DNA of 64,000 nt, from NCBI GenBank assembly GCA_047495785.1, contig JBLDXI010000031.1:434001-498000 (forward strand), in the 5' to 3' direction. The notes under the pieces were generated by a model, which had not been told where the DNA came from, made no database searches, and saw only the letters and a list, made by a program, of their open reading frames with translations. This stretch comes from Lepidodermella squamata. Lineage: Eukaryota > Animalia > Gastrotricha. This document shows, piece after piece, positions 1 to 54,258 of the stretch (positions are counted from its first letter, which is position 1; each line of letters begins with the position of its first letter). The translations under genes and the position numbers were made by a program.

Positions 1-276
1 CTGGAACTATCAATTTGCGCTTTCGTCTTGATCGTTCCGATATTCAATGTTGCTGCACTTTTTATGACTAAGGTATTTGATTTTGTATTCCTATTCGAAG
101 CGGTTTTCTAAACGTGAGATTTTCAGGCATTCCGGCGGAAGCATAGTAGCGTATTGAGCCGAAGCGATGTGCAGCCTATGCCCCCTCATTCGGTATTCGA
201 TGCATTCAAGGCGAATCCACTTTTCACAGATTTTTTAGTTCAAGACAGCGGGTTTCGCATTGGAATTAAAGCTTGA
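1..276 (+). CDS. 3' end (TM7 and tail) of a class C GPCR, paralogue of the 8807-11797 gene; 5' part lies outside the window
   Basis: Frame 1 reads LELSICAFVLIVPIFNVAALFMTK, then GT-AG intron 73-126, then AFRRKH...GIKA*. It aligns with 11572-11797, including the intron position. Confidence 0.85.
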
Positions 277-832
277 GCGAGTTGATTGCTGTAAATTCGA
301 AATCTCAATGTCTGACGAATCTTGACAGTTATATACAACTCCCTAAGAATTTTTTCAAATACTTGAATTACTGGAACGGTTTCGACGATGAACTGGAGCG
401 GAAATAAAATTAGCTTAGAATGGCAGACCTACATCTTAATAAACAATGAGTCTGAAGCTGGAGCACAGTTCGTACCGCACAATATGCTTTGCTTTATCTT
501 AATTTGCATCGGAAAATCTAAAATAGGTGCTTGTCGGTGTACGTCAGCTACTCTCAATTAGCTTCCCAAATAACTTTTTTCAGCATATAATTGTGTTTTG
601 AAGTATCAAGGCATGGTACGCAGACGATGGTCCCCGCAAACGATTTGCCCCCTGCTAATCATCACGTTTTTGACATTCAGTCGACGAAATTCAAAGCGAA
701 ATGAGTTAATATTGGACTGCAGTTGTCGAGTTTAGTACATACTGTCAGTATTGCTGAATTGAACGAATCACGCTGGAACTCGTTGTTATTATCAAATTTG
801 TTGCAGAATTTTAACGTTTCACAAGCTGAACA

Positions 833-3800
833 ATGAGAGTAAACAATTGGGTGCTCTTGCAAATTGGTTTTAGTTTTGCCATGGCGAAGATTCCATTTCG
901 AAGCCAGATGCCAAAAATTATCACTTCATCGGCATATGCGAACGAAACGCTTAGAAACACGACAAATACTCGAAAAATTATCAAACTGATGTCAACAATC
1001 AATTACGCAAGTCCACTATTCGCCCTTGGCACAATGTGCACCGAATCGATGCGAATGGCTCTTGACAACATGCGGCAACTCCCGAACTTCCTCGAAGATT
1101 ATGAAATCGTCATTGAACCCTACGAAGATTACGTAAGGTGGTACCAAGACATTTTTATCAAATTTAGTTACCTTCCGTGTTTTCAGTGTGCGCGACAATT
1201 CACAGTTTCGGCATACGTCTCATTTCTTCAAAGGGCTGTTCTACCAGGCAGTATCGCTTTCCCCCTGACTTTAGCCTCCTTTTGTCCAGGAAACAGTCAC
1301 GCTGGTATGATATCGGTACATCACAACGTTCTCCAAGTAAGAACACGCTATTCATATATTTCCATTTATGATTTAGACATTTCTGTTAGCTTACCGAGGT
1401 CAGCGCGGCTCCGGAAACCTACAACAACAGGCAGTTGTATCGAAACTTGTACCTCATGATGCCATCTCCAAGCGCTGCCATAGAATCAGTGGCCTGGTTC
1501 TGTTTGAAAATGGGCTGGACGCGGCTTTTCATGTTCTCGGAGAACGTCGATTACGCCATCGAGCACGAATCCAGGATCATCGCTGAATTCGATCGGTTCA
1601 ACGTTACCTACTCATTTCAATCAGTCAAAATACCTTTCCAAGAGGGTTTACCGCCCGATTCCGAGGCACTAGAGAGAGGAATTGGGGAACTAGCGGCTTT
1701 GAAGCCTAGGATCATGTTGTTTGAAATGACAATCTTCTCTCGAGTCGCATGTTGGCTGCATCGATATGAAATTTACGGTCCTAACTACGTCATCTTGATC
1801 ACGAGTGGCGGGCTCTTTGAAGAAAATGATTTTCTGAGATTTATGCCTTGGTGTACCCCACAGATGTTACGTGACGTTCTCCGAACCATCATTAGTTTCA
1901 GCTACTCAAATGTTATGAATAGTATGTCTGATGGCGGATCGTCTTATAAAGACTACACTGGCACGTCTGGCAAGGAATTCGAAGAAAATCTTAAACTAAT
2001 TGTCGAAAGTCCTGAGAAGCAGCCTGTTTGGTTCTTTTGGAGGTCATTTTGCTACGACAACGTCATAGCAGCCGGCTACGTCCTCAATGCGACTGAGACT
2101 GTTTTGAAATCGCGTAATCAGTCGCTTATTGACTGGACGATGCCGTCGCAAAGGTTTCAAAATAACGGGGGCGAGATTGTCGAAATTATGAAATCAATTC
2201 TCGACAAAATGCAACTTCGCACGTTCCTGGGCGAGGTGACATTCGATCACAGAATGAGGTTCGCCTACTCACAGATCCAGGAAAGTGACACTGAAAAAAG
2301 TTATTCCAATCAACAGCTGCCGAGACTTGTTGCTATTCCTGTGGCTATTTACAACGTTGATGAGAACAACGCGAAATCTATTGAATTTGGACCACACAAT
2401 TTCATCTGGAAAACATGGAATGGAAAGGCGCCTGAAGATCGATTAAAAGTTGTACAGATTCAAAAACCGGTTTTAGGCCTAGCATCATACGGAGCACTGA
2501 CAGGCATCGGATGCATAGAATGTTTGCTTCTAATCGGTCTTCTTATTGGAACTATAAGGTCTCTAGTATCTGAAGGGCGTAGAACTCGTGAAGCTAAGTG
2601 TTGTAGTTTGTCCATGATTTTCTCCGATTTGCTGCTTTTATGCAACGTCCTCTGCCAGCCTCAGGATCCGAATGAATCGACCTTAACTTCAACCTGCATG
2701 CTTTCTTATGCATTTCTCACGCTCGGTCTGTCAGGAATTTTCTTCAGTTTTATGGCGAATTTCGAAGTGGTTGCAAAATCTGTCAAAGTTGTCGCGAGTA
2801 GAGGAAGACTTCAGTCTTCTACAGCTAAAGAATTACAAACTCGAGGGAGCAGTGTTTATTTCAGAGAGTCTTCGGCAAATGAAGCGAGGATATCGGTGAT
2901 ACCTGTTAGCCAAGTTTCTAGCTTCAAGCGGAGGTTTTTCGCATTAGGATTCGGACAAACTGGGCTGTATTCCATGCTACTTCTAGCTTGGTTCATTGCT
3001 AGCCCATTTGAAATTGTAACGCGCACAGTGGACTATGTAGAAGATGCCAGGAACCCTGCCCTGGCTTATCTCTACTTAACCCTTTCATGGCGGAATTATT
3101 TATCAGCGGGAGAAAAAATATTTGACGGCGGTTCTAGGGGTTTTAGAGGACCCTGATCACGATTTTGAAACCCGTTTAACTCTATCTATCACCGTTAATG
3201 CTGTACAAAAACTGGCCGAAATCGTCCTATCCGCCCAGCTGATTTCAGCAGATTTTTCGAACACGCTAACTTCTGTGTCAGTGATTCCAGCTTTGGAATT
3301 TTAGATTATAAATTACTCCCATGAATGTCCCCAAGATTCTCCCTCACTTAAATCGCCAAAAACATTCAGTTTAAAAAAGATTCAGAGGCTCAGCATTCAG
3401 ATCTGAATTCAGCTTTTCCAGTTTTTGCTCGCGGCAGTTTTTGCAGCACAAAAACCACGCACTCCGCCTGTATGAGTCGAGGCGGATAGGACGATTTCGG
3501 CCGGTTTGATTAAATCTCAATAGCGTCGTCATTTTTGATTTCCAACTCGAAAAAATTTACAAAGAGGTCAATGAGACTATGGCGGACACGGTGGTATTTT
3601 TGTTGGATCAAAAAATGATCAGAAACCTATGAGATTTCAAGTTGAAAAAAATCGAAATTTCAATCTCAGGTTGACTATTTTCAAATTGCTTTTATGTCCT
3701 GACCATGCAAGATAACCGCGCCCTGGTCTTAAAACCTTGTAGCCAACATCGAAAAGCAATATTCCTGAAAAGGGCGATCAAAAATTCATCGAATTCAATT

Positions 3801-4287
3801 TTCTGTGAATTTTCAAAGTCGAAATTCCGAAATCGTCCTTCCCGCCGTGAAAGGGTTAAGGAAAGAATGCTCTATCCCAGGGAATCAAGTTACCTATGGC
3901 ATTGTCGGAGTTTTAGCCGCCATACCTTCAGCATTCATCCTGAGGTCTTGCCAGCTCATTCTAGGACTTGATCGAGTAAGTTTTTAAAGTTACGCTAAAC
4001 CTTGATTAATTTCGCCCTTTGATTAGACGAAGAGCTCTCGAAGCAAGTTGATGTCAAATTGTTTCTACGGCAGTGTCATACTGATTGGATGTGCCTGTCT
4101 GGTATGTGGCGCCATCTTTAGCAACGATCAAGGTCATCTTCGAATTTCGCTGTCCGCTTTCGTTCTGATTCTGCCGCTTATCAACTCAGCGCCGTTATTG
4201 CAAGAGTTCATGGGCGGGAAGAAAAAAACTACTGAGTTACGTGAATCCGTTACGGCGTCGCGGCGCAGGACAATTTCGTCGCGCTGA
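833..4287 (+). pseudogene. Class C GPCR (GABA-B-like, VFT+7TM) 'R-A', interrupted by a 776-bp TTAA-site MITE in ECL2
   Basis: Exons 833-1132, 1187-1336, 1390-3975 (minus insert) and 4027-4287. Signal peptide present; collinear with intact paralogue 31800-34597. Removing the insert plus one TTAA restores YLYLRKECSIPG. Confidence 0.85.
3080..3855. mobile_element. Non-autonomous piggyBac-type element (MITE)
   Basis: TTAA at 3076-3079 and 3856-3859. Ends are CCCTTTCATGGCGG and CCGCCGTGAAAGGG. The empty site is visible in the paralogue near 34050. Confidence 0.93.
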
Positions 4288-4804: not shown

Positions 4805-5163
4805 GCTTGTTGGAAATATATTGGTTCATAGACGTTAGCCGCCTCCAAGTTTCCGACTGCTTTATATGTCTAATGTTTAGCAAAGCAACTTTGTCGAATT
4901 TGCACTCCGTTTAACTTTAGAGTCTGCTTTGATAATAATGTCAATAAGGATTATTACAGCTCTCAGCTTCATTTCAGTCATTGCTTGTTGGAAATATATT
5001 GGTTCATAGATGTTAGCCGCCTCCAAGTTTCCGACTGCTTTATATGTCTAATGTTTAGCAAAGCAACTTTGTCGAATTTGCACTCCGTTTAACTTTAGAG
5101 TCTGCTTTGATAATAATGTCAATAAGGATTATTACAGCTCTCAGCTTCATTTCAGTCATTGCT
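4805..5163 (+). repeat. 178-bp tandem duplication covering the promoter, start codon and signal peptide of GPCR R-B
   Basis: Copies begin at 4805 and 4983 and are almost identical (one C/T difference seen). GCT microhomology at the junction. Confidence 0.95.
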
Positions 5164-7449
5164 GGGGAATCAATTAAAAGAAAGGAACTTGTTGTATTAT
5201 CGCTACATCCATTCGCGGGTTACGAGCCTCTAACCTTCCAACACTGCCGCTCTGTCCAGCAAATGGTGGTTGACGATGTGAATAAACGCAGCGACATTCT
5301 ACCCGAATACAAGTTGACATTTGACTTCCGAAATGAAGGTGCGGCTGGAATGCTGGCTGTCCGAAGTACTTTTGATTTCATTCGCCAGCCAGTTGATTCG
5401 TCTAGAATTCTGTCTCCGATTACAACCGGCCCGCTTCAAAGCGTTGGTTGCAAAGCTTCGGGGACAATCCTACACCACCTTGACCTCATTGGAATCGGAT
5501 CGTCTTGCACTGCTCCTGGGTTGATAGATAACAGATCGAAATATCCTAATTTGTATCGGATCCGTGGCCCAGCTCAAGCTTGCATGACGAGCCGATTAGC
5601 TTTCTTGAAGCGAAAAGCTAGCCACGTGAAGAAAATGGCTATAATAATGCATTTATCAGCAAATTCTTACAGCATCGAGACCGGGAGTTTTTTGTTCAAA
5701 GCTGCGACTTATAAAGGCTTTGACATCACATTGTTCGAGGCCAGCCCTGATTTCAATGACGATTTCATGCTTCACTTGAAGGAGCTCGATATCAGAATTT
5801 TCAACATGGAGACGAGTGAAGGAATAGTAGCCCTGAATTTTCTCTGTATGACCTACAAACACGGAATAACAGGGCCGAAGTATCGATTCATTCTCCAAAT
5901 GGCATCGCAGTTCGTTCCGCCAGTTCTGCCCCCAATGCTGTGGTCGAAGTGCACTAGGGCATTCATAATCGAACAGTTGAAGTCCACAATCTACGTCGGG
6001 GCTCCGACTGAAATCTGGCTACCACCCCCAGCTAGCAGTGTTGACTCTCTCGGAAGGACCCTAGAGCAATTCAACGCTGAACTTGATGCTTTTACAAACA
6101 AATCGAGACCTCCTGGGGATTTCAGTTTTCGACATCTCTGTTACGATTCCGCCCTTCACACTATAGTTCGGCTGAATGTAACGAATCAGCTGTTGCAGTC
6201 GCAAAACCTGACCTTCGAAGATTACCGCACGAACCCTGGCTACGTGGTAAAGATTGCCGAGCAAAGCTTTGCTGCAGAAGTTCGCGACTTGAGGTTTGGG
6301 CTCCTTAAATACTCAAAACGCATGGAGTGGGATGAAGAGCCTCAATTGCTCGGGACTTGGTCTGAAGCGAAGCAATCTGTCGATGTTCGATACAGAATGG
6401 TTTGCTATGAAAACTGCGCTGATGAAATGAACGCTGTCTTCAAAATGGATGAGCTCAATCCTTTGCCAAGTTTCCCAGCTGATGGCGCTGTTAGAGCCGT
6501 TACCTTCATCGAATTCCCTGAATCTGGCTTCATATCCATCGTCGTTTTGAGTTCGATGGGAATTCTTGCAACGTTGGGAATGTGCTGTCTCAGGATAAAG
6601 AGATCATCAGTGATAAAAAACCCAGTTTTTCTCGGTCTGATTCTCATCTTCGGATCTAGCATTCCTTTCGCAGCCACAAAGTCTCTAACCAACGCTTTAG
6701 GCTGTTACTTTAGGATCATTCTTATTGTCTTGGGTGTTAGTATAACTAATTCATCTCTCGGACTTAGTTTAATGCTTCGAGTTACTCGGGCCCGAATTAG
6801 GAGAACTGAAACAGGTCTAGCTCTGCAGCGAAATTATAGCGCCGCATTTTCAATGGGCAGAAGCGTTGGCACTGCTGAACATTTACAAAGAGTTGATTCA
6901 TCCTCGAATGTCTCACTTAGTCGCAGGAAAAATCATTCTAGCACTAATCGTGAGGTCGCAGTCGAAATTCACGAAGCAAATCTCACCTCAAAAGTGACGA
7001 TCTTCACACTTCTCAATATCATTGGAATAGTTGCGTGGCTGCTAGGCGATCAACCGACTGTTACAGAGGTTATACTTTCCTCAAAGTATCACGAAGATTC
7101 TGATGCTTGGATTGATACGAAATCGTTAACATGCCAGCTCAGTCGTCAAAATAGCTTGGGGTCCATCATTCAGGCTGTTTTGATCGTCCTGAATGCTATT
7201 CCGCTAATAGGTGGTTGTTTATGCGCACTAAAACTGCGAGGGAAGTCTGTCTCATTTGAGATTCAGAGGACGAAGGTTGCGAATGCTGTGTCTTTAACGC
7301 TCTTCATGGCTGGTATTGCTGTTTCGGCCATGGTCGCTAATCAACCTGTAGCGTTGCAGGGGTTGATTAGTGGTATTTTAATAATTTATCCAGCAGCTAT
7401 ATTTTTGATATTGGCTCTTAAAAAACCAAACGATACCCCCTTGTCTTGA
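5116..7449 (+). CDS. Intronless class C GPCR (GABA-B-like) 'R-B', ~777 aa
   Basis: Signal peptide; VFT motifs (DVNKRSDILPEYKL, YPNLYRI, CYDS); seven hydrophobic helices with Cys in TM3 and ECL2; no cysteine-rich domain. Confidence 0.9.
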   Translation: MSIRIITALSFISVIAGESIKRKELVVLSLHPFAGYEPLTFQHCRSVQQMVVDDVNKRSDILPEYKLTFDFRNEGAAGMLAVRSTFDFIRQPVDSSRILSPITTGPLQSVGCKASGTILHHLDLIGIGSSCTAPGLIDNRSKYPNLYRIRGPAQACMTSRLAFLKRKASHVKKMAIIMHLSANSYSIETGSFLFKAATYKGFDITLFEASPDFNDDFMLHLKELDIRIFNMETSEGIVALNFLCMTYKHGITGPKYRFILQMASQFVPPVLPPMLWSKCTRAFIIEQLKSTIYVGAPTEIWLPPPASSVDSLGRTLEQFNAELDAFTNKSRPPGDFSFRHLCYDSALHTIVRLNVTNQLLQSQNLTFEDYRTNPGYVVKIAEQSFAAEVRDLRFGLLKYSKRMEWDEEPQLLGTWSEAKQSVDVRYRMVCYENCADEMNAVFKMDELNPLPSFPADGAVRAVTFIEFPESGFISIVVLSSMGILATLGMCCLRIKRSSVIKNPVFLGLILIFGSSIPFAATKSLTNALGCYFRIILIVLGVSITNSSLGLSLMLRVTRARIRRTETGLALQRNYSAAFSMGRSVGTAEHLQRVDSSSNVSLSRRKNHSSTNREVAVEIHEANLTSKVTIFTLLNIIGIVAWLLGDQPTVTEVILSSKYHEDSDAWIDTKSLTCQLSRQNSLGSIIQAVLIVLNAIPLIGGCLCALKLRGKSVSFEIQRTKVANAVSLTLFMAGIAVSAMVANQPVALQGLISGILIIYPAAIFLILALKKPNDTPLS

Positions 7450-8806: not shown

Positions 8807-11797
8807 ATGTTTGCAATAGTAACTATAACACTAATAGCTATTGGTCTTCAAATCGAAGCGAAAGTTCCATTCAGAAGTTCGCTACCTAAGCTTATCTCAG
8901 CTTCAACCTCAAATGCATCCGTTCAGTCGGACGAAAGGAAAATGATCAAATTATCGGCTGCGATTCCATACCTGGGCCCACTGATTTCGCTAGGAGCGAC
9001 TTGCACGGAATCTATGAAAATAGGACTGGACAACATGCGAGCTCTTCCCAACTTCCTAACAGATTATGAAATCGTTATCGAGCCATATGAAGATTACGTA
9101 AGCCTTTTCTTTAACTTGATTGGTTTATCGAACTTAAATGCTGAATCTAGTGCGCTCGGCAAATAACTATAGCAGGTTATATGGGATTCCTGGAAAGATC
9201 GAAAACACCGAATAGCAGCTATTTCCCATTATCTCTTGCGTCATTCTGCCCCGGGAACAGCCATACTGGCTTGATTTCACTCCATCAGAACGTGCTACAG
9301 GTAAATCCGGATCATTTTCCAAATTCGCTCACTATATCTTCTAATCTGAAGTTAACAGAAGTGAGTGCTGCTCCTGAAGTCTACAACGACCGAAAAGCTT
9401 ATAGAAACCTCTATTTGATGATGCCATCGCCAAGCGCGGCTGTTGAATCAGTCGCTTGGTTTTGCATGAAAATGGGCTGGAATCGACTATTTATGTTCTC
9501 GGAAAATGTTGACTATGCTAATGAAGTAAGTTCCCCCAAATACAAATTCTGTCAGATTGATAATTTGATGATCCATTAAGTCGATTCAAAGTACTTATAG
9601 ATGGAACTTCAACTTCCCCTCTGAATTTCTAAATCTCCTTACAGAATCACGTAGTTCAAAATATTGTATTCAAATGTTTTGCAGCACAATGCCCGAATAA
9701 TGTCCGAATTCGATCGTCTGAACATTTCCTATTCGTATCAAACGGTCAAAATGCCATACATGGGTGGCCTACCTCCAGATTCCGAATCTTTGGAGCGTTA
9801 TGTTGGCGAACTAGCGGCTCTGAACCCTCGCATTATCCTCGTCGAGTTGGTCATTCTATCACGAGCAGCCTGCTGGTTCCACAGGTACGGCCTTTACGGG
9901 CCTAACTACGTCATTATCATCACAAACGGCGGTTTATTCGACGAAAATGACTTTCTGCGCTTTCAACCTTGGTGCACATCCCAGATGTTGCGAGAATTTC
10001 TTCAAAGCGTCATTAGTTTTGGTTACTCTAACGTGATAAACAGTGCTTTAGATGGAGGGGCGAGTTACCAGGATTTCACGGGGATGTCTGGCAAAGAGTA
10101 TGACGAGGCTCTGAAAAACGCAGTCGAAGGTGCAGATAGGCAGCCTGTTTGGTGGTTCTGGCGTTCATTTTGCTACGACAACATCCTGGCGGCTGGTTAC
10201 TTACTCAACGCAACGGAAGCTAAGCTGAAAAATCGTAATTAAAAAAAACAATCCCATATCCTGCTAATTGATCCTTTTAGAAAGTGAGACCTTAAGTGAT
10301 TGGTTAATGGACGGAGCTAAGTTTCAAACGAATGGAAAAGACTTAATACAAACTATGAGATCCATTCTCGACCACTCTTCTATACGAACGATGCTAGGCG
10401 AGGTGACATTCGATAAGCGCATGAAGTTTGCCTACTCGCAGATGCAGTTGAAGACGGAAGAAGGCGTGGCGAAGCTCAGTCCAATTCCTGTTGCTATTTA
10501 TGAAGTTGACGCTAACGAACGGAAGTCGATGAAATTAGGCCCGGGAAAGTTCGTTTGGCGAACTTGGAATCGCCTAGCTCCTAAAGACAGTTTAGTTTTG
10601 GTCGACATCCAAACGCCTCGATTTTCATTAGCAACCTACGCAACCATACTCCGTAAGGGATTCGGACATTTCTATTTTTGTTTAACATTCAATTTCTCGC
10701 TTAGTTTTCAGCGTGTCTGAAGTAGTCCTGATAATTGGGTTGATATGCCTCCAGATTTATCGAAATGGATTTCCGGTCATGGAAGATCTTTTTTCCACCT
10801 TTTTAATCTTTTCAAGTGACATCATTCTTCAAGGGTTTGTTCTCAGTCAGCGATACAACGGCAAAGCTTCGGAGCTGCTTCCATCCTGCAAAGCATCATT
10901 TACTATGTTAATTTTCGGTTTAGTCTCACTATTTTTCGGCTATTGCGGGAAGTTTGAGGTTTGGTACCTGGAGCGGAAATCGATGATTTCGAAAAGTACG
11001 AGTTCCGGGCATGTTTCGCAAAATCATCTGGTCCACAACGATACTTTCATCAATGCTGTTACCCTTAAAGTCCCAAAAGTTTACAAAGTCAAGCCAGTAA
11101 CTAGTTTTGAAAAGCGAAAACTGGTGAAATTACGCAGCTTGCTTGTGATCCTTATCAAAATATGCGTGGCTACGCTGGTAGCTGTGGTAGTCTGGTTGGA
11201 ACAAAGCCCGATTTCGATTTTGCGAGCGTATGATAAAGACGAATCTTACTCAAAACATGCTGCGATCACCTATCAGTACCACAGCCTGAATTGTTCGATC
11301 AACGAGAATTGGGCTGTTTACCTGTTGGCAGGGACGATCTTCACAATTTTAACAGCTCTCATTGCTCGATCGGTCTATCTAGTTTTCAGACTTCAAAATG
11401 TAAGTTGAAAATGATTCCGTTGACATATACTTATTTTCATTGTTTTAGATAAAGCTCCATCCTCAAATTAGGGCTGTAAAGATTTTATCAAACGCATTTT
11501 TTGCGACAACCACACTCATGGCAGCAATTTTGCTTGTTTCCGCGGCAATTTTCCGAAGTGAGGACGCGCAGCTGGAACTATCAATTTGTGCTTTCGTCTT
11601 GATCGCCCCGATTATCAGCGTTGCAGCCCTATTCATGACTGAGGTATTGTATTTTGTAAATCACATTCAATGCTATTTTAAGGTTAATATTTCAGGTTTT
11701 CCAACGGAAGCATCGCGTATTGAGCCGTTGCAACACGCAGCATATGCAACTTCGTTCGGCGTTCCATTCTGCAAACCCACAATTCACAGATTTTTGA
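8807..11797 (+). CDS. Class C GPCR (GABA-B-like) 'R-C', 8 exons
   Basis: ORFs 8807, 9181, 9664, 10268, 10713 and 11518 join in frame through GT-AG introns. Shares MMPSPSAAVESVAWFC and WRSFCYDN with paralogues. Last exon is 11696-11797. Confidence 0.88.
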
Positions 11798-12323
11798 GTC
11801 AAGCAATTGGTATCGATCGGCTCGAAACCGCTCCGTTTAGAATAGTCCTAGAATAGTCGAATGAATACTGCATGAATATTGGGAGTTCAATATTTGAGCC
11901 CCAATTTGCACATAATGATAATTTATTAACTGAAAGTTTCTTGACTTGACAAGCGAGCCAGCTGATGATGATCGGACGAGTTGCCGGCAAGCTTTCCCTA
12001 AGTTTTTACGCCGTCAATTCGTAAAAATGTGGCATTGACCAAAGACTTTAGCTATTTGAATATTGTGGTCACCTGCCTCCTTGAAAATTTCCGACCAGTT
12101 ACTTTTCAACCGTTCATGGCACGGCAGCGAGCGATGGCTCAAAAAAACAGGCGAGGATCATCTTTCGAATGGATGCAGCCGCGTGAATAAAGTCCACGAA
12201 TTGGTGCTGAGTGAATAACTTATTAAACAAGTTAGTTAATCCTTTTATTTTTTCCCAAATTATCAAACAATTTACTAAGAAATAAAATTTACTAAGTGTT
12301 TGCTGATCAACAAACGTCCCTCA

Positions 12324-13193
12324 TCAAGCCCCCCTGGTGCATTTCTCAACATAGAACGAACCGGATGTTGACGTGGGGGCTCCATAACTGAATTGGACGC
12401 CATCGGTTCCTGCGATAAGATTGGAGCAGCATGCAGCGAAGCTAGCAGAGGCCAAGCTATTGGGAGTAGCAGGTAGTAAATCATGCTGTGAAAGAATGAC
12501 ATTCATACAGAAAGCCAAAGTGAATATTTATCAGTGTGCGAAGTTTGATTCTGAAGCTGAGATGCTTTCCTCAGCCGAAGAAATCAAAGGTTCAGCCTCC
12601 TATATGCATCGCATGTTAATCAAACGCACCTGAATCGTTATTCCAACGGTGTTAGTCTCACAGCTAGATGGGAATCGCAAGCAATACCCAGCGGGCGCAG
12701 AGCCGCAAGCTTTGAAGGGCCTCGCATCAGTGCCAACTACACCGCAGTAGGACACCATAGTTGAATTTACCGATATGACATCGTATATCGTTGTCGTCGC
12801 GGTTCCGCCAAGAGATGAGCAGCAAAGCTCGAACGAAGTCGCCCCAACTCCTGTCGAAACGCCGCCCAAGTTACACAAGCCATTTCTGGTGCAGTATTTG
12901 AGGGTGGCTGCCACAGGGGAAGCACCTATTGTTGCGACTGAGCAACCGGCATATGATGTCTAGGATAACGAGCCGTGAGCCTATTTCTCGAAAGAATATC
13001 TATGACTCACTGTTGGCGGTTGACAAGTTTGTCTCGCCAAGGCACAAGTGTTATCTGCATAGCAGACTGTGCTTGCCGGGCAAATACCTGTGGCGCAATT
13101 AGTGCTAGCAAAAGTTCCGATAGATGTCGACGCTGGACAGGTGATGGCATAACTGAAGAAGGACGCAAAAACCGCAAACAAAGTAACGACCAT
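12324..13193 (-). CDS. Secreted 18-Cys protein, type A, copy A1 (~224 aa)
   Basis: Exons 13193-13011, 12959-12630, 12485-12324, all phase 0. Signal peptide then CPAST; YCLRFPSSCET motif; ends EKCTRGA*. Confidence 0.88.
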
Positions 13194-14344: not shown

Positions 14345-14704
14345 AATCGCGAGATCGAAAGGTCAACCTTTTCATGGTATTGATCCATCTGCGGCTAATG
14401 TATCGTTGCTATGTAGTTCTGTGAAATTTCGTGAAATACAATGTACCGATGATTTTATTTATAGTTGGCTATGTGATATTTGATCACGGTTCGGGCTCCG
14501 CTTACAGTTTGAAGTTACTCAGTCCTCCTCCTCCCCCTCCTAGTCTCCTGGCTAGGGGAATCGAAACACACTTCGACGGAATTGATTAAACGCCGAATGT
14601 CTCAGTTGTTCGGCGGAAACATCTTTCGAGCAATCATTCTGAGATCCTATTAGCTGATGTTCACTGGAAATTCTAAGTCTTCAAAGTATTATCAAATAGT
14701 GATA

Positions 14705-44707: not shown

Positions 44708-44947
44708 TCATTCCGTTTGCCAGCATTCACACTTCTCCTGCGATCTAGCCAAATAGTACTTGCAATTTTCGTCGCACAGCATGTAATTCCGATCTGGGCA
44801 GCCGCATTCCAAGTTGCTATCAGGCATAGCGTTCTTGCATTCTTCGGGGCAGTATTTTAAGACGGTTTGTAACCCTGAAGTTGATTGGAGATGCAGGACA
44901 GCGACAACTGCGACGAGGGCTGTCCAAACTAGCAATTTGTAGTTCAT
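44708..44947 (-). CDS. Small secreted 8-Cys peptide P1 (79 aa)
   Basis: Signal peptide; C-x3-C-x10-C-x-C-x7-C-x3-C-x10-C-x-C; clear paralogue of 50965-51210. Confidence 0.88.
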   Translation of the reverse strand: MNYKLLVWTALVAVVAVLHLQSTSGLQTVLKYCPEECKNAMPDSNLECGCPDRNYMLCDENCKYYLARSQEKCECWQTE

Positions 44948-45262
44948 TTCTAAGAGCTATCAGAATTCTGCTAATTTTTATCTCGGCGAATCGCAGAAAT
45001 GTTGTCTAGAATTCGCATCACGTTTATGTTGGGATTAGAGTCTAGACATAATTCTCTTGGCAAAAGAGAAAGGGCTCTGTACCAAATCTTCAGTTGAGAC
45101 TTAGTTTCGAGACGAATGGTGCAATTAACGTGATATCGGGTTATCGCTGAGACACTTAATTCCAGTAATTAGCCTCTCTATTCTTTATAATAAGCTTTTT
45201 TGAGAATGAAATGATCACCACTGCTAACTCACTTGCTGAAGTTCTCGATTTCCCCGGAGAAA

Positions 45263-45574
45263 ATGCTGAAAGGATTGATCCTATTTGCGGCAATGTTTTA
45301 TGTTGCAACTGCGCAAACAACTCAAGCGGTAAACGGAACTAAAATCTTTGATTTCTTCAACGCAACTGAATCGGAGCTGCAAGACTTCTTCAATAATAAC
45401 CGCCGACTTTGTCCTGGCTACTGTGAACATGCGGCTCCGATGCCGCCCGATTTCATGTGTGACTGCCGCGGAGAATATTACGGTAAAATGAAATTCTGCC
45501 CAGCTGAGCATTCTTACTGTGTCTTCTCGCACTATTGGCAAGAAACGGATGAAGCATGTAAATGCGAGGATTAA
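45263..45574 (+). CDS. Small secreted 8-Cys peptide P2 with a pro-region ending in RR
   Basis: Signal MLKGLILFAAMFYVATA; CPGYC...CDC...CPAEHSYC...CKC; AATAAA at ~45647. Confidence 0.82.
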   Translation: MLKGLILFAAMFYVATAQTTQAVNGTKIFDFFNATESELQDFFNNNRRLCPGYCEHAAPMPPDFMCDCRGEYYGKMKFCPAEHSYCVFSHYWQETDEACKCED

Positions 45575-45798
45575 TCGACCTTCTGTGTCATATTTGTGAC
45601 TCATCCGAGAAGTACTTGACCCTTGGAGTGTTTTGAAATCGAATTTAATAAATTGCTATTTTGTTGACTGATGGTTGTTCAGGAATGCAAAACGCAGCGG
45701 AACTCAAGCAGTTCCGATTTTTTTGAATACAAGAACTTAATCTTACATGCAAGGGTCCAAATATTCTTGCCCAGATATTATTCCAGTCAGGTTCAGGC

Positions 45799-45942
45799 AC
45801 GGTGCGAAGTAGGATCCGGGAGCTGAGGTGTTTTCTACTTGTTTTCTAGCACCCAGCTGAAGAAACTTGTGGTTTTTTCAGCCTTCCTATGGTTGGAGTC
45901 CGGGAGCTGGGGTGTCCAGCACCCCTGTACTTCGCTCCACTT
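45799..45942. mobile_element. Degenerate short MITE
   Basis: Imperfect inverted ends GCGAAGTA and TACTTCGC, with an internal GGGGTG..CAGCACCCC hairpin motif. Confidence 0.4.
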
Positions 45943-46599
45943 CAGGTGTTTGCAGCGTAAATGAACCCAAAAGGTAAGCCAGAACAAGATTTTGTGAGCA
46001 GGACACGACCTAAATGATTACCCGGATGGATAAACACGATCCTTGCATAGCTTTCATTATTTGTATAGCCTTCCGCCTTTTCCCATAGAAAATATCTCAC
46101 AACATCGAAAGATAAGTCATATAATTCAAAAGCAATCAGATGTTGCGCAATCCTTCGATCGGTGGATTGAATATTGGGAAATGAACGTTATTGCCCGGCA
46201 AGTCTGGCATTTCTCCACATTTGCATTGCTCCTCTGATAAATGCGCGTAATACCAGCAAGATGAAGTTTCAGATATGGCCTAAAACGCGAATATGTCGCA
46301 CCAAACAGCGTTTTGAAAAAGTCATATGATCGGAAAAACCGATATAGATTCTGAAAGCCCTGGTTTCGGGCTACATTAGGAACTTACAATTTTTGACTTT
46401 CTCAGATGACGTAACACTTATTACGTCATGTCAAAATACTACCTAACAGGCGTGCCAAAAAAGTGTTTTAGAGCAAATTTTGCCACTTGATTGCGAGCAA
46501 AGTGTAACAGCTGGGCTTTTATCGTTTTGCAAGTGTGTGAAGGTTATGTCAACGGAGATTTCCTGAAAATTTCGGCGTCTTTTGACAAACAGATGTTGC

Positions 46600-48547
46600 G
46601 TAATTGTCAAATATCAAAACGCTGTCAAATGCCATCTGTCGGTGACAAAATTGATCTTCGTTGTAGTCAGCTCTTAGAATCCGTGAGTTATAGGCTCCAA
46701 ATATTTTTCTGAAATCCCCAGTGACCATATCTATTTAATTTGACACTTAAAAGCTATGTGGGAGTTCTCCGTATACTAGTAATCAGCGTCACCGAGGGAG
46801 AAAGTTTCTGTCGGTGACGCTATTTTTTTCCTGTCACCGACAGATAAATTAACTATTTTTATGCTGTTTAGTCGTTATTTCGGCATTTTATTGAATATTG
46901 AGTATGCCAGCAAAAAGCGGAGCTGAAAGGACTGCAAAATGGCGTTCTAATCTCAGTCAAAAACAAAAGGCGGACATTCGAGAACATGATCGACTGTACC
47001 ACACCGAAACACGGGCAGCAGAATCGTCTGCTGAGACGGAAAAGCGACGCAAGAAGGACAGGGAGAGTAAAAAAGCTACCTATGATATGAAAAAGGCAGC
47101 TAAAGCCGAAGTTGTCGATACACCAGTGGTGGAAGAGCCTGATGAAAGCCATGAAGAAAACAACGACTCGGCCTATTCGAGTCGGCAGCGATTAGGTCGC
47201 GATTATGCAAAACTCTGGAGAGCACTGCCGACAGATCCTTCGAAGCAGCAAGTTCTGGCCATGAAGCTAGCTAAGGACCAAGGTCTCGGCAAGCAATTAC
47301 CTAAGAGGCAATACAAGGGGCGACCGATTACCGAGCAATTGAAGGTATTAATTCAGGAAATATATGAAGAACATTCACGAGTATCGCCAAATCAACGTGA
47401 CGTCAAGCGCTAGTTACGGATGCGAGAACATTTGCCTCGATTTCTGAAGCTATTGTTGAGAACGTGCAATGCTTCTTTGTCAGCAGCGAAGCAGTGGATC
47501 GTTGCGAGCCAGAAGTCGGTGATGTCTGGGACGGTGAGGAATTAATTCAAAAAGAAGTGAAACAAATTCCCGCCACTCAAAAGCAACATTGCTTTCAAGT
47601 CATTTCACCTTATGTGATTAGCTACACTTCAATTTCGGACTCAAACGACTCTAAAACTCACGAGTTTCACGAAGAATCAAGTTTGCGACGAAGGCGATTC
47701 TCCACGGTCTCGATTGAGAATGATGATGATGAAATGGACGTGAGCTTTTCCAATGCTCTCTCCAGCACAATTGTGGATCGGCCAAAAAGCGCATTCAAAC
47801 GCCCGGCTCCTATTTCGCGAGCTGGTTCAGTGAAAAGACCGGCAACTGCTGCAGCTAAAAGACCGGCAACTGCTGCAGCTAAAAGACCGGCAACTACTGC
47901 ATCTAAAAAACCAGCAACTGCTTCAGCGAAAAGATCAGCAACTGCATCGAAAGTCGACGATTCATTCGACGATTCATCATCTGACGAATCTGACCAAGAA
48001 CCGCTGACCTATCTGAAAAGTAAATGTGCCAGGTGCGACATAAGCTGGTCGGAATGGAAAAAACAATCGAAGGAAGGTCAGGAATGGGGCCTTTGCAGCT
48101 GGTGCTTCGAATGGTTCTGCTTTATCTGCTCTCGAAAGGCCAACTCAAAGTTCATCTGCTCGGAATGTCAGGACTAACAATTATTTTGCTGTCACTGCTT
48201 TTTTCCCCTCCTTATACTCCTATGTATTGATTCTCGAGTTGTTATGTGGTCATTACTAGTAAATATGGCGAAAAAAATCAATTTGAAAATGTCTTTTTAA
48301 AACCTCTATCGGTGACATTTTGCCTCCTCCGTCGGTGACGCAGTTTTTGTACCTCCCTGGCCTAATTTGAAATAAACTCGTCACTTTGTTTATGTTTTTT
48401 TATTCCTTGAACCTGTGCGGAAGTTTTAAAATTCATAAATAATCTTTTAAACCCAAATCTGATTAGGAAATTTAGTTGGAAAAAAATGCGAAAAACAGCA
48501 AAAACATTTTTTCTCCGTCGATGACGGCCCATTTTCGACCCACCCTG
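46600..48547 (+). mobile_element. Internally deleted DNA transposon, Sola2-like by recalled motifs; left boundary unresolved
   Basis: ORF1 has a basic N-terminus (YSSRQRLGR..RALPTDPSKQ..LA, SRVSPNQRD). ORF2 has FFVSSE, IPATQKQHCF, KRPATAAA repeats and a C-terminal PHD-like Cys finger. GTCGGTGAC repeats occur on both sides. No catalytic core. Confidence 0.6.
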
Positions 48548-48682
48548 CAATGACCTTGAACTCGGTTGAGTCGCGGATAGGCTTAAAACATAGCCCTAAG
48601 TGGCATACACACGTTATTAGAAGCGCTCAAGAAAATACATCGCCGTTGCCTGTGAAAACTGCCTGATGTGTCGAAAAAAAAG

Positions 48683-48904
48683 TTAATCTTCTCTGTCGGT
48701 AACTCGTGTTTTAGGCCATATCGGGCATCGTTTATACTCAGGCGGACAGCCGCAGTCTGCCTGCAGATTTTCGTCCATAATCACTATGGCTTGGGCGCAC
48801 TGATCGCTAGGAGGGCAGTGGCGCATTCGAGCGATTGGCGGATTTTCTATCGGAGAGGCAGATATAGCGGCTACCAGAGAGAAGATCGTCAAAATGCGTC
48901 TCAT
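48683..48904 (-). CDS. Small secreted Cys peptide P3 (5 Cys; truncated or spliced C-terminus)
   Basis: Signal MRRILTIFSLVAAISA; HCPPSDQC...DCGCPPEYKRCP matches the first half of the P-family framework. Confidence 0.65.
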   Translation of the reverse strand: MRRILTIFSLVAAISASPIENPPIARMRHCPPSDQCAQAIVIMDENLQADCGCPPEYKRCPIWPKTRVTDRED

Positions 48905-49108
48905 TTTTAGGAAGAATACGATGCTAGGGAAAGTTTTAGTGCAGTATATATTTTGAAAAGCCTAAATCTGTCTAGACAATGAGCCCTACAATACCCACTA
49001 AATGTATGTCTTGAGTCTTGATTACCGTATTGCCCACTTGATAAAACAACTCTTTGCACCTTTTTGATGGGATATGGGATACCCACTATGTAATCCCCTC
49101 GACACCCC

Positions 49109-49158
49109 ACGAGGAACACACGAGGAACACACGAGGAACACGAGGAACACGAGGAAAC
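49109..49158 (+). repeat. Short minisatellite (ACGAGGAAC[AC]) x5
   Basis: Directly visible tandem units. Confidence 0.9.
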
Positions 49159-49793
49159 ATCTTGTTTCAAAGCTTGAGCATGGCTGGGCGCAACTTACAC
49201 GATGGTTCCCATTGTTCCTGGACCATCCAAAACAGTAGTGGGGAGTGGGATAGGATCAGCACGACGCAAACGGACGCAAAGTGCGATGAAAGGTTTTCAA
49301 AAGTTAAGCTGAAAATACTCGAGAGAGAAAAATTGAACAATCTAGTATTCCAAATTTAGTTTTCCAACTGCCATATGGTTTACGAGTGAGAATCCGGTGC
49401 ATGAATCCGGTGAATCCGATTTTTCTGAGAATACGGTGTGGAAGGCTACTTTGGAAGTTAGGATTGCCATTGCATGTGCGAATCCATACAGATACTATGC
49501 CCAACGGAAACTGTGATGTTATGATCGACTTCCAAATCCTATGAAACTTTGTCTTGCAATTACGAGAATAACCGACTCGATATATTTTTTCAAACCTCGA
49601 ATGAGTTAGGTTGAGAACCACAGATAACTTAGTTTCTGTGGCAGAAATTTTTCCACTTTTGACGGGGAAAACAGAAGATGGAAAATCGATTGCTTATTTA
49701 TGTCTTTTACAGTAATAGTAAATTCAGTTATCGTTTTTATATTAAGCTTTATTTTCAAGTGGGTCGTCAAGTGCTTGAATAATCTTGAATAAT

Positions 49794-50093
49794 TTATATC
49801 AGATAACCAGGAACTCCGGTCGCGCCGAAACGAGGCTGTGCATTCTCCACACCTTCGCCCACATAGCAACCGCAATCAGGCAAGCTCGCCGCCATGTAGT
49901 AATTGCAAAATGCCTCTTTAAGTGGGCACTTGATGTGACCGGCAGGGCATTCGCATTCGTAATCAGCGTCGTAGCTCTCAACCCTAACCATTCCTTGTTT
50001 GCACTGAGGACCACAGTGAATGTCGAAGGCCTGCATCTCAGCTGAGGTAGCTGCAACCGAAATCATCAAGCAAATAGCTATATAGCCGTTCAT
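49794..50093 (-). CDS. Small secreted 8-Cys peptide P4 (99 aa)
   Basis: Signal peptide; HCGPQC...CECPAGHIKCPLKEAFCNYYMAASLPDCGCY. Confidence 0.85.
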   Translation of the reverse strand: MNGYIAICLMISVAATSAEMQAFDIHCGPQCKQGMVRVESYDADYECECPAGHIKCPLKEAFCNYYMAASLPDCGCYVGEGVENAQPRFGATGVPGYLI

Positions 50094-50964
50094 TGTTGAG
50101 ATGATGAGTTTACGTAAATATGAAACGTAGGGGAAAAGAGTGTTCGATGTTCGATACCAATAGTAATGGGCTTTTAAAGGAATAAGGCTTCTACTAATGC
50201 CCAGCTACGCGGCTTACTTTGCAGACATTGTAATGATGTAGCACGATTAATTGGTCCAATCAAAAATCCCAGGTTTCACCTAAATTTGAGTAACGCCTAG
50301 ACCATTTTCAGTTGAAGTAACGTAAAAATACCGCCAGCTAAGCTTGCTTCGCTCGCTATTGGTTCTATTCATTGATACATGGCCTGCCAATCGAAAAATT
50401 TACTGAAGCTAAGAGCGCATAAACAAGCGAGCGTGTGTAGCATGCGAGCCCAAAATCTCACTATTCCCATCTCAGCGAATGGTCCACAAAACACACCCCA
50501 GGGCCTTCGGAAACCTCTCGAACTGCCGACAAATACTTTTTCCACCGCACTGTCCACTCCACGCGTGAATTCGCGCATGCACTACATAAATTTGGTCTAT
50601 TTAGAGAGCTAAGAACAGTAAACCAAAATCTCGTGAGTTTGATATGTTGGAACCGTTATGACGAAACGAAACGAAAAGGCGAATAGTCCCTTCCAACAAA
50701 GCAAAAAGCATGGTAAATTTCGATATTTGACTGATTTGGACATTTCCTTGCAGCCTCGCAATTTGTTTCCAGCCAACGATTTTATTGTTTGGAGGAGAAT
50801 GGGTGAAAGAGAATTTTCAGAGCAGTCCAGTTTATTTTATTCAAAATTTGATTTCTATATTAAACTGAATCGGGAAACGTTTTTAGAAAACAATGGAACT
50901 GTCATCTCTTGGGTAATAGCATTCTAAGCTCGACTAGTATTCTGAATAAACCTTTGAAACCAGA

Positions 50965-51210
50965 TTATTCGTTAGCGACGTCGTAGCATTCGCACCTCTC
51001 CAATTGCCGTGCCATGAAATACTTACAGTTATTTGGGCACAGCACGAATTGCTTGTCCGGGCAGGCGCAATCTTTATTGTCATCCGGCATCAGGTTGGCA
51101 CATTCAGCCGGGCAGTGCTTGAAATCGATAATCGCAACTGCTGGTTGCAGAACTGCCAGTAGGACAATAGCGACCATCGCATAAGAAAGAATAACTAATT
51201 TATTGGCCAT
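50965..51210 (-). CDS. Small secreted 8-Cys peptide P5 (81 aa)
   Basis: Signal peptide; Cys spacing identical to P1; shares MPD, CPD and CKY(F/Y)xAR. Confidence 0.88.
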   Translation of the reverse strand: MANKLVILSYAMVAIVLLAVLQPAVAIIDFKHCPAECANLMPDDNKDCACPDKQFVLCPNNCKYFMARQLERCECYDVANE

Positions 51211-51559: not shown

Positions 51560-51658
51560 GAAGGCTGGGTCTTAAAACTTGGGATTTGTAAATGAGTGGA
51601 ATAATTCGGTGCGGAATTCATTGTTGTTTGATACTTCAACAATTCAGGAATGATTAAT

Positions 51659-54258
51659 CTATATCCCAATCCGCTTAAGCTTAACTTTCCTCGCTTGACG
51701 GAGCTTGAAAAGCAGCCCAAGGTTAAGTGTCACACTAGCCAGATTCATTGCTGACAGAGCGTAGCGTTGCTTAGTCTGTTCTGTGAAGATAACAGCCGCG
51801 ATCACCGCAACAGCAGCCAGCAGCACGATTGTCCCATAAAAGCATATAACTACCGCTTTCAGGTCGGTCATTTGCCCCATAGTTAACTGAAAAAAGATGA
51901 AATCATCCAAAAAAATCGCAACAATATCTTGAAACATCTCAAACGATATTTACTTACTGATCTAACTTTGTAAGCAGCAAGCGACCCTCGAAGCATTAGA
52001 ATCATGATAATCGCACAAATACCGCCTATGGTAGCTTTGCTAAGATCTGAATCCCCGGTGGAGCATTCGAAAACAACCTCCTGATAAGCGAGCGAATCGT
52101 CGAGGCTTGAAAGTTGAGGCGTTTTGAAAGTCGCAGTCAAGATATGCGGCTCGAGGGAAAAGCAAATCAGCAATAAAACGATCAAAAATACGGAAACACT
52201 TGCAATAGCCATCGTAACAATATTGTACCTTCGAGCAAATTTAGCGTAAGGGCTCAGTTTCTTCACAGTGGAAGCTAACTTTGCGGCAGCTGTTCCGCAG
52301 CTGTATCCTAAATTGAATGCGTTTATCAATCGGATCACATTTCTCTCTTTCCGGCTTATCACGCTTAGCACCTTGGCGAGCTCTATTTTACCGACCATAG
52401 CTGAGACCAGGAAGAATATTCCAAGGAACAGCAGACCGTAAGAGGCCATGCAGAATTTGGCAAGGCCTTCTTGATACCAAGGTAACTGGACCAAATTAGA
52501 ACTCAGAAGTAGTAAATCTCCAAGCAAAATGAACGCATTGAGTTTTGGTAAGGAATTCCTGATCTGTGCAGATTTTCGACATTTCATCTGGTTAAAAGCG
52601 GCTGAAATCACTGCGAACGCCCCGAGGCATGACAGGATTGTTATTGCAATATAGGCCTCATTTGAAATTAAGGGGAGAACGATTGCAGCAATCCTAACCG
52701 AATCTGGAGGGGCATTACCACAATGAGTTTCCCATTTCAATTTACCAGGTATCAACTCGAGTTGTTTAGCTTTTGTGTCAAAAGTCGCGATAGGAATCGC
52801 AAGTGGGCTCGAGCTGTTAGGTAGTAACTGAAGCTTAAAGAATCCGAATATCACATTCCCACCCGAGTTGAGGGTAGTATTTCGCTCGAAGGCGATCTCC
52901 CCCGTTTTTGTTGTAACCCGAGTCGCGAAAAGCGCTTCCTTCATTTTTTCAATGACATAACTTCCGTTTGACGCGAAATTCTGCCCAGAAGTCACCCAGT
53001 CGATAAGTGACAAATTGTCCTGTCGCAGGTACGTCTGAGTTGCATTTAATAAATGGGCAGCTAAAAGCACGCTGTCATACGTGTACTGGCGGATAGCCCA
53101 GCTCATTTTTGTCTGAGGATCGTCTATACCAGATATCAGCATAGAATCAAAGTCCGAGCCAGAATTGCCTGAAGAATCGACGAGATTTCCCTGACCCAGG
53201 GTCATTGTGTTAGTATAGCCGTGTTGAATAACGGATTCTACGACATCCCGTAACATAGCCTCTGAGCACCATTCGAATCGAAAAGGATCAGTTGGCTGGA
53301 AAGGGGTCAGCATAGACACGGTAATAACGTAGCTAGGCTCAAATAACTTGTAACGATGAAGCCAGCATGCAATGCGAACTGGCGATGCAGTTGCTAAACT
53401 AATAATTCTCGCGTCATTTCGCTTCAATTCCTCCACTACAACGCGTATGCTTTCAGAATCTGGTAGGATACCATTGAGTAATGGAATTTTGTACTGAATG
53501 GATGAGGTTGCGTTAAATTTTTGTTCCAGCAACTTTTGCGCGTAAATATCGCTAGCGTATAGAGAATCTTTCATATCTGAGACGAAATGCAACTTCTTCC
53601 AACCCATAGCCATCAGGAAAGAAATCTCGGCATCCACAGAAATCGTCAACGGTGGTGATACGATAAATAAATTCTTGTAAAGATTCCTCTGCATGAAAAT
53701 ATCACTCCGAGTGGTCCAGTGAGCTATCTGAAAACAAAAATTCGGACTTTTATATAAGATTCGGCAGTTTGGCTTACACTCATGAAGTTGTAATGCTGCA
53801 GAGTTTTTCCCAAGGTGAATTGAACCGAACAAGTTGGGTACAGAATAAGAGGAAATCGATCTGGAACTTGGTCATTCATCATCTCAGCGAAAAACCTCAT
53901 GGTCGCCAAAGGTTCACTGCACTTAAAAAGGTTCAAGTTATAGGTGATGTCATTTTTAGGACGATTCACTTACAAAATCCTCGATTGGATCAATGGCAAG
54001 TTCGATCCCCGGTAGAAGATTAGGCTGTCGCTTTATGCTGTCGAGCGCATATCGAATTCCCTCAGAGCAAATGGGGCCTTGTTGATAACTGGTCCCGGCA
54101 TAATGGCACGAAAGCAAGAGGCTGATTGTAGCCCTCGACGAGTCGTTAGCGTTGTAAGTTGAGGATCGAATTCTCGACGGTATCGAGCTGTTCCAGAGCA
54201 ATTTAGCCTCAATAGACAACGCTGCAAGTAGGACGATAAGATTTTTCATAAGATTCAT
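51659..54258 (-). CDS. Class C GPCR (GABA-B-like) 'R-F', divergent paralogue, 4 exons
   Basis: ORFs 54258, 53969, 53832 and 51937 join via GT-AG introns at the same positions as in R-A/D/E. Motifs ACWLHRY, YTYDSV and W..GNAPPDS; 7TM. Confidence 0.88.

Follow-up and report, generated by a model that had tools for sequence, protein, structure and literature searches.

Across 54 kb of the window (the whole 64-kb stretch of DNA that we analyzed), GABA-B-type receptor genes alternate with arrays of orphan genes for secreted cysteine-rich proteins, and this interleaving is probably explained by ordinary local gene duplication and not by a matched receptor-ligand system. The host genome is a small-intron genome. 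Using six-frame ORF all-against-all BLASTP, tblastn with the spliced R-D protein, and DNA self-comparison, we resolved the window into six full-length class C receptors (R-A to R-F), the cut tail of a further receptor, a receptor relic, and secreted genes comprising 11 A/B genes (18 Cys), two distant relatives of these (C1 and C2), and five genes for small 8-Cys peptides (P1 to P5). The features are laid out as follows.

1-244, + strand: further receptor gene, its 3' tail cut by the start of the window, matching the last exon of R-C (11572-11803) at 74% of nucleotides
833-4287, + strand: R-A, with 82% identity to R-D over 565 aa (tblastn) and a frame that stays open when the insertion is left out
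833-1132, 1187-1336, 1390-3079 resuming at 3860-3975, and 4027-4287, + strand: exons of R-A
3080-3859, no strand assigned: piggyBac-type MITE of 780 bp in exon 3 of R-A, with a TTAA duplication (3076-3079 and 3856-3859) and inverted ends CCCTTTCAYGGCGG
5116-7449, + strand: R-B, placed by Pfam ANF_receptor, PDB GABA-B1, and Atlas features
8807-11853, + strand: R-C, with a gene model that is approximate at the 3' end
12326-30342, both strands (A, six genes, -; B, five genes, +): A/B array of three-exon genes
12326-13193, - strand: A1
13534-14344, + strand: B1
16692-17486, - strand: A2
18334-19164, + strand: B2
20371-21449, - strand: A3
21850-22609, + strand: B3
23508-24598, - strand: A4, a truncated remnant
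25499-26290, - strand: A5
27158-27991, + strand: B5, with a frameshift in exon 1
28442-29214, - strand: A6
29517-30342, + strand: B6, with intron 30134-30189 seen in RNA contigs
31800-34597, + strand: R-D, with intron 32310-32362 seen in RNA contigs
31800-32105, 32160-32309, 32363-34174, and 34229-34597, + strand: exons of R-D (878 aa)
about 35171-35983, - strand: C1, a distant A/B relative with a partial exon model
about 38842-39588, - strand: C2, a tandem copy of C1
40823-40964, + strand: relic of a receptor C terminus, resembling the end of R-D in nucleotides (74% identity to 34475-34611) and in protein (66% over 29 aa to R-D residues 851-878)
41696-44512, + strand: R-E, 868 aa, four exons
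44708-51210, both strands: P1 to P5, single-exon genes
44711-44947, - strand: P1, an 8-Cys secreted peptide
45263-45571, + strand: P2, an 8-Cys secreted peptide
48686-48904, - strand: P3, missing the last three Cys
49797-50093, - strand: P4, an 8-Cys secreted peptide
50968-51210, - strand: P5, an 8-Cys secreted peptide
46895-48174, + strand: pair of adjacent ORFs encoding a K/E/A-rich protein whose tail is Cys rich and zinc-finger-like, with no signal peptide and no Pfam family
51659-54258, - strand: R-F, 808 aa, four exons, placed by Pfam 7tm_3 and PDB GABA-B1
54383-58999, no strand assigned: piggyBac element, its ends TTAA/CACTTTAACTGCCC, encoding a DDE_Tnp_1_7 transposase
59566-63729, + strand: ORFs with repeated PAN/Apple domains, beyond the range of the original observation (1-54258)

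BLASTP, tblastn, and DNA self-comparison bore out the gene order given in the original prediction (receptors, A/B, R-D, C, R-E, P, R-F, PAN), and its description of class C Venus flytrap (VFT) receptors accompanied by two families of secreted disulfide-rich proteins holds. Its statement that every host gene encodes a receptor or a secreted protein stands with one exception, the K/E-rich ORFs with the zinc-finger-like tail, which belong to neither class and are probably element derived. Birth-and-death turnover, claimed for both classes, is evident in R-A (broken by the MITE), the receptor relic, the truncated A4, the frameshifted B5, and P3, which is short of Cys. No housekeeping genes were recognized in the 54 kb.

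All six receptors were modeled as open spliced frames with GT..AG introns of 46 to 159 nt. In each, a signal peptide and ~500 aa of extracellular domain are predicted, together with about seven hydrophobic segments. R-C has seven exons, i.e., three introns more than R-D; the possibility that it is a pseudogene was ruled out, since the breaks in its frame are introns with good splice sites. R-B is intronless and very divergent (777 aa); it matched Pfam ANF_receptor (2.9e-15) and GABA-B1 in the PDB (1.4e-13), and its Atlas features lay at 0.97 to 7tm_3+ANF_receptor clusters, which are without NCD3G. R-F matched Pfam 7tm_3 at 36.5 bits (cutoff, 33.5) and GABA-B1 in the PDB at 3.8e-7. R-A, R-C, R-D, and R-E were linked to R-F by BLASTP (1e-62 to 1e-70), with R-E aligning over 612 aa, membrane part included. 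These four receptors have seven predicted hydrophobic segments and align to the membrane part of R-F; they gave no direct Pfam 7tm_3 match, and their PDB profile alignment stops after TM3.

A profile of all six receptors matched GABA-B1 (9e-15) and GABA-B2 (6e-9) in the PDB, with an alignment that was unbroken from the VFT into TM1 to TM3, and the sole further class C match was to a T1R (3e-4 over 77 residues). Pfam gave no match in the receptors to NCD3G, the cysteine-rich domain (CRD), and the GABA-B1 alignment was continuous from the VFT to TM1; nor did Pfam report a GBR2_CC coiled-coil domain for them. The window receptors are class C GPCRs of the GABA-B type and are not V2R-like. The analogy with V2Rs that had been drawn from the sequence fails on architecture, given the missing CRD and best matches to GABA-B1 and GABA-B2. 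Word-indexed searches with R-E exon 3 and R-B against 5.8 billion proteins returned only the queries themselves. The HMM alignment places SYGSSSP of GABA-B1 opposite LTEVSAAP of R-A, R-C, R-D, and R-E at ~20% identity, where residue equivalence is unreliable; on this low-confidence reading, GABA itself would be an unlikely ligand of these receptors.

The two halves of the receptors have evolved differently. Among R-A, R-C, R-D, and R-E, the VFT is 63 to 89% identical, versus 25 to 73% for the 7TM, and VFT identity exceeded 7TM identity in 14 of the 15 receptor pairs. Pairwise dN/dS, estimated gene-wide and in receptor windows of 50 codons, was 0.02 to 0.21 for the VFT and 0.26 to 0.41 for the 7TM. 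No exon, and no 50-codon window, with estimable dS reached a ratio of 1, and all paralogue comparisons, receptor and secreted, indicated purifying selection (dN/dS, 0.02 to 0.68). R-D and R-E share an identical + strand tract of 335 bp (32360-32694 and 42254-42588), attributed to gene conversion. Flytrap likeness does not track which secreted family adjoins: the VFT of R-A, which has no secreted neighbor, is 89% identical to that of R-D, which sits between A/B and C. The pattern is an unusual one, in which the membrane half of the receptors diversifies and the ligand-binding half is conserved.

DNA self-comparison of the window revealed no unit joining a receptor to a secreted gene; the units were receptor-only, A+B-pair-only, or C-only. 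The match between R-A and R-D was confined to the gene body. Among the A+B cassettes, 12646-14423 matched 20878-22687, A2/B2 matched A5/B5, and A1/B1 matched A6/B6, while C1 and C2 were 81% identical in nucleotides over 1.3 kb. At a dS of at least 0.5, decay of the neutral flanks has gone too far for the full reach of a duplication to be seen, and an old co-duplication of receptor and secreted genes is therefore possible. We also observed an x-C repeat, in which 34847-34911 matches 38511-38577. Together with the receptor relic beside C2, this repeat may be what is left of a repeated receptor-plus-C unit.

The explanation that we favor is a duplication-rich stretch in which three lineage-specific families, the GABA-B-type receptors, the 18-Cys A/B/C family, and the 8-Cys P family, would have expanded independently and become interleaved through ordinary local duplication, decay, and rearrangement. 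A duplication-prone region had been named as an alternative in the original prediction itself, and it fits better than functional linkage. With a signal peptide and a VFT that runs directly into the 7TM without a CRD, the receptors would most likely be orphan sensory or modulatory receptors for small-molecule ligands. A and B are copied together as head-to-head pairs; a shared promoter is probable, and the two products may act together. The striking order, with three secreted arrays each lying between receptors, counts against a view based on duplication only, as do the lack of a recognized housekeeping gene and the transcription of both classes in one RNA library.

The families might instead form a coregulated neighborhood without direct binding, in which a shared chromatin domain serves one cell type, such as that of a sensory or secretory epithelium. 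Tissue-restricted gene classes are indeed densely packed here, the head-to-head intergenic regions of A/B are short (303 to 868 bp), and both classes were transcribed in one RNA library, where RNA contigs confirmed the splicing of B6 and R-D. However, no 7-mer was common to at least four of the six receptor upstream regions, and RNA contig depths were uninformative. We regard coregulation as rather unlikely. Scans of metagenomes with the receptor and A/B/C profiles gave no match, and a related run from the same study (X2) yielded nothing at a likeness of 90% or more.

The original prediction had put forward a functional receptor-ligand locus as a possibility. On this reading, the secreted proteins (A/B/C or P) would serve the adjoining receptors as ligands or as partners that present ligands, and selection would maintain the linkage in the manner of pheromone or self-recognition loci. 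Surface and secreted genes do adjoin over 54 kb, both classes are expressed, linked receptor-ligand loci occur elsewhere (the Brassica S-locus and basidiomycete pheromone/receptor loci), and V2Rs sense peptide pheromones (PMC9018814). However, none of the tests that we ran supported the inference, and several spoke against its diversified pheromone or recognition-pair form: receptors and secreted genes form no co-duplicated unit, selection is purifying throughout, the VFT is the conserved half and does not track the neighboring family, and the architecture is that of GABA-B receptors without a CRD. Characterized VFTs of the GABA-B type bind small molecules. Functional linkage is, in our judgment, improbable. 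It is possible that a conserved family of ligands acts on a conserved VFT; what is weakened is the diversified-recognition form of the idea. A specific version, in which the A+B pairs (and perhaps C and P) would be protein ligands or cofactors acting on the conserved VFTs of R-A, R-C, R-D, and R-E, with the fast-evolving 7TMs routing one shared signal to different intracellular outputs, strikes us as very improbable. Were the linkage functional, the locus would be without precedent among GABA-B-type class C systems in having protein ligands linked to it in the genome, and it would offer a way to de-orphanize a large invertebrate receptor expansion.

The secreted proteins belong to two superfamilies (A/B/C and P) and not three, since C1 and C2 are distant A/B relatives: they carry the A/B motifs CC...PYK...YC[LV]RFP, and C1 has a longer Cys-rich N-terminal part. 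Three exons encode each A/B protein, which has 18 Cys and measures ~230 aa, or ~200 aa in mature form. An exhaustive search of 1.84 billion representative proteins with the A/B/C exon-2 profile recovered one true relative, P0002, which is full length and comes from a contig of transcript-like character in a different run; the other two hits, both long and repetitive, were taken to be compositional matches. A word-indexed search for homologues of P0002 returned nothing beyond the query. Pfam gave no family for A/B/C (all exons) or for P1, P2, P4, and P5, and in the Atlas A/B/C and P had just generic small Cys-rich peptide neighbors (<0.9), with P5 placed loosely among defensin-like small peptides (0.72 to 0.80). 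AlphaFold2 models of P0002 with exon-2 rows (pLDDT, 38.5) and of P1 with four paralogues (pLDDT, 47.6) were too poor for a fold search. Judged by these sequence comparisons, A/B/C is a true orphan family. The lack of Pfam or Atlas families and the low-confidence structure models might suggest that the small genes are not real but are chance ORFs or decayed repeats; this is scarcely credible. P0002 counts against it, and, for A/B, it is refuted by the B6 intron spliced in RNA contigs, by full canonical GT..AG models with signal peptides and conserved Cys in six A/B genes (B1, B2, B3, B6, A3, and A6), and by dN/dS well under 1 (0.11 to 0.68 at dS of 0.24 to 2.2).

Several known systems resemble this locus in part. 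Defensin-like and toxin-like clusters of animals and plants share with the secreted genes a signal peptide, a Cys framework, and tandem arrays with pseudogenes; in contrast, A/B/C and P have no sequence family match, and the A/B proteins are larger, with their 18 Cys, three exons, and head-to-head A+B arrangement. The Brassica SRK/SCR S-locus and the basidiomycete pheromone/receptor loci are linked receptor-ligand loci, and they too place surface receptor genes beside genes for small secreted Cys-rich proteins. However, matched pairs in those loci are inherited and diversify together, whereas the window contains no unit pairing a receptor with a secreted gene, is under purifying selection, and encodes ectodomains that ignore their neighbors. 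With V2R/OlfC receptors, the window receptors share a clustered multigene class C family, a VFT, and candidate chemosensation. In V2Rs, the VFT is highly diverse and the 7TM is conserved (PMC9018814). The window receptors, with their conserved VFT, are the reverse of this; moreover, V2R/OlfC receptors have a CRD and fall on the CaSR/mGluR/T1R side of class C, while the window receptors lack it and are GABA-B-like. The likeness is closest to GABA-B1 and GABA-B2, which are the best matches of solved structure and in which the VFT likewise leads into the 7TM with no intervening CRD, although identity to GABA-B1 is low and the 7TM of the window receptors evolves faster than their VFT. Lineage-specific GABA-B expansions have already been described in sponges (bioRxiv 10.1101/120998), and the likeness to such expansions lies in an expanded family and its tandem arrays. 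Beside these, the window has descriptive value as a well-resolved lineage-specific GABA-B-type array accompanied by an orphan 18-Cys family in A+B head-to-head cassettes.

Six-frame ORFs, compared all against all, fell into clear families at the places named in the original prediction and bore out its order of receptor and secreted-protein genes. G+C content is ~43% across the whole window, and the features run as follows.

1-244: receptor tail, first in the gene order
After the receptor tail and before the A/B array: class C receptors R-A, R-B, and R-C
12.3-30.3 kb: A/B array (18-Cys secreted-protein genes in head-to-head pairs), followed by receptor R-D
29517-29747, 29804-30133, and 30190-30342: exons of B6, a three-exon gene of the array
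After R-D: C1 and C2, then a receptor relic, then receptor R-E
Between R-E and R-F: P1-P5 (genes for 8-Cys secreted peptides)
54258, minus strand: start codon of receptor R-F, its end in the window
54383-58999: piggyBac element with TTAA flanks and ~130-bp inverted ends starting CACTTTAACTGCCC
Past R-F and the piggyBac element: PAN-domain ORFs

Two adjoining ORFs at 46895-48174 (+) encode a K/E/A-rich protein with KRPATAAA repeats and a Cys-rich, zinc-finger-like tail. It lacks a signal peptide, falls in no Pfam family, and is neither receptor nor secreted; the ORFs are probably element derived.

In every receptor, an ectodomain of ~500 aa is accompanied by a signal peptide and about seven hydrophobic segments. 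R-B matches Pfam ANF_receptor, and R-F matches 7tm_3 above its cutoff. In searches of solved structures, R-B and R-F both matched GABA-B1, R-D exon 3 alone had zero matches, and a profile of all six receptors matched GABA-B1 (9e-15) and GABA-B2 (6e-9). By Atlas features, R-B was placed at 0.97 among 7tm_3+ANF_receptor clusters without NCD3G. Since the profile alignment to GABA-B is continuous from the flytrap (the ligand-binding ectodomain) into TM1-3, the receptors have no cysteine-rich domain. These matches, together with the domain layout, identify very divergent GABA-B-type class C receptors. The original prediction was thus right about class C receptors with a flytrap, but the V2R/CaSR type behind its analogy does not apply, as GABA-B1 is the best match and the cysteine-rich domain is absent. 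Word-indexed searches of 5.8 billion proteins for the receptors found nothing.

Gene models were guided by two GT..AG joints in RNA contigs (public run X3), one at an R-D intron (32310-32362) and one at a B6 intron (30134-30189); the RNA evidence consists of assembled contigs from one small library, compared over window positions 28600-34599. Introns at the locus are tiny (46-159 nt). R-D (878 aa) has four exons, a plan shared by R-E and R-F, while R-C has three introns more than R-D and R-B has none; the frames of these five receptors are all open, with canonical splice sites. Such a wide range of intron numbers in one receptor family at one locus (0 in R-B [5116-7449], 3 in R-D/E/F, and 6 in R-C [8807-11853]) points to loss or gain of introns among close neighbors. 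R-A is intact except for a single 780-bp insertion in exon 3 (3080-3859), whose TTAA duplication and inverted ends CCCTTTCAYGGCGG mark it as a piggyBac-type MITE. Skipping the MITE restores the frame exactly, and the insertion is either a very recent knockout or polymorphic. It differs from the element at 54383-58999, which carries a DDE_Tnp_1_7 transposase split across two ORFs, plus another ORF that is K/R-rich. The R-B start codon and first 16 codons are repeated in a tandem duplication of 178 bp (4805-5163; 99.4% identical), which gives rise to a 24-codon upstream ORF at 4938; the duplication may be recent or an assembly artifact.

The two predicted families of secreted Cys-rich proteins were confirmed as an A/B/C superfamily and P. 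The B6 protein (231 aa) carries 18 Cys and a signal peptide and lacks a membrane anchor, and B1, B2, B3, A3, and A6 gave clean models on the same three-exon plan; in B5 the first exon is frameshifted, and of A4 only a truncated remnant is left. Intron 2 of A3 (20527-20858) is 332 nt long versus 48 to 56 nt in the other fully modeled A/B genes and may hold an insertion. Stray A/B pieces occur at 16022-16084 and 24335-24598: one is an exon-3-like fragment on its own, the other an ORF fusing exon-1-like and exon-3-like parts, with exon 2 missing. RNA contig depth reached 528 in bin 28600-28799 (3' half of A6 exon 2) and was 1 to 4 over the next four bins, in the remainder of A6; DNA depth in the peak bin was also ~2x baseline, and the peak could come from a close paralogue that is highly expressed elsewhere in the genome or from an unrelated short transcript. 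C1 and C2 have the motifs CC, P[YF]K, and YC[LV]RFP in common with A/B and are therefore distant members of that superfamily. P1-P5 are single-exon genes whose products have a signal peptide plus the pattern C-x3-C ... C-x-C, twice; the second half is missing from P3. Neither A/B/C nor P has a Pfam family or a convincing Atlas neighbor, and structure predictions (pLDDT, 38 and 48) were too poor to use. When 1.84 billion representative proteins were searched exhaustively with a profile, one true A/B/C relative emerged: P0002, a C-like protein of 227 aa encoded by an intron-free, transcript-like contig of 929 nt from another public run (L001, 1-929). At least one further sample therefore contains the family; a further search for relatives found nothing more. 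A/B/C is a genuine orphan family. The secreted families are real genes, being spliced, conserved, and under purifying selection.

The original prediction read this linkage as a candidate receptor-ligand (pheromone, recognition, or immune) locus. DNA self-comparison of the window detected no duplicated unit combining a receptor and a secreted gene. The R-A/R-D match is confined to the gene body, C1 matches C2, and the A/B array was assembled from A+B cassettes (A1B1 with A3B3, A2B2 with A5B5, and A1B1 with A6B6) and probably also from a two-pair block of ~8.5 kb. A 65-bp repeat lies upstream of C1 as well as C2 and, with the receptor relic adjoining C2, leaves slight room for an old receptor-plus-C unit. 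Among A/B paralogues, dN/dS (here and below, pairwise Nei-Gojobori estimates) is 0.11 to 0.68 at a dS of 0.24 to 2.2; the duplicates are mostly old and constrained, with no sign of diversification. Nor does the ectodomain follow the neighboring family: although R-A has no secreted neighbor and R-D is placed between A/B and C, their flytraps are 89% identical, and R-D and R-E adjoin different secreted families yet share a perfectly identical 335-bp tract (32360-32694 and 42254-42588). With normal divergence on either side, this tract is a gene conversion in the flytrap-coding part. Ectodomain similarity is therefore independent of the neighboring family.

The most likely reading, and one we hold with reasonable confidence, is the alternative that the original prediction itself offered, a duplication-prone region: receptor, A+B, and C would have been duplicated separately, and the receptors, A/B/C, and P would each have expanded on their own as lineage-specific families. 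A shared expression neighborhood, in which receptors and secreted proteins are linked without binding, is unlikely; no 7-mer was common to at least four of the six receptor upstream regions (a weak negative). Less likely still is a weaker form of the original idea, in which a conserved flytrap would respond to a likewise conserved family of secreted ligands. Diversified pheromone or recognition pairs are disfavored by duplication units, selection, flytrap conservation, and neighbor independence alike. Metagenome scans with profiles of the receptors and of A/B/C were blank, and related run X2 contained nothing at 90% likeness.

A conserved flytrap joined to a fast-evolving membrane half (7TM) is the most unusual feature of the locus. 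In exon 3 of R-A versus R-D, the flytrap part has a dN/dS of 0.02 to 0.21 and 86 to 98% identity, compared with 0.26 to 0.41 and 60 to 66% for the membrane part, and flytrap dS is no lower than that of the membrane part. Of 15 full-length pairs, 14 show higher identity in the flytrap than in the 7TM (63% versus 25% for R-D and R-C; 73% versus 34% for R-D and R-E). In V2R/OlfC receptors, by contrast, the flytrap is the highly diverse part (PMC9018814), and the predicted V2R analogy fails on this count as well as on receptor type. Sponges, for example, are already known to have lineage-specific GABA-B expansions (bioRxiv 10.1101/120998), and the receptor array described here, likewise a lineage-specific expansion, is a further case of that kind.
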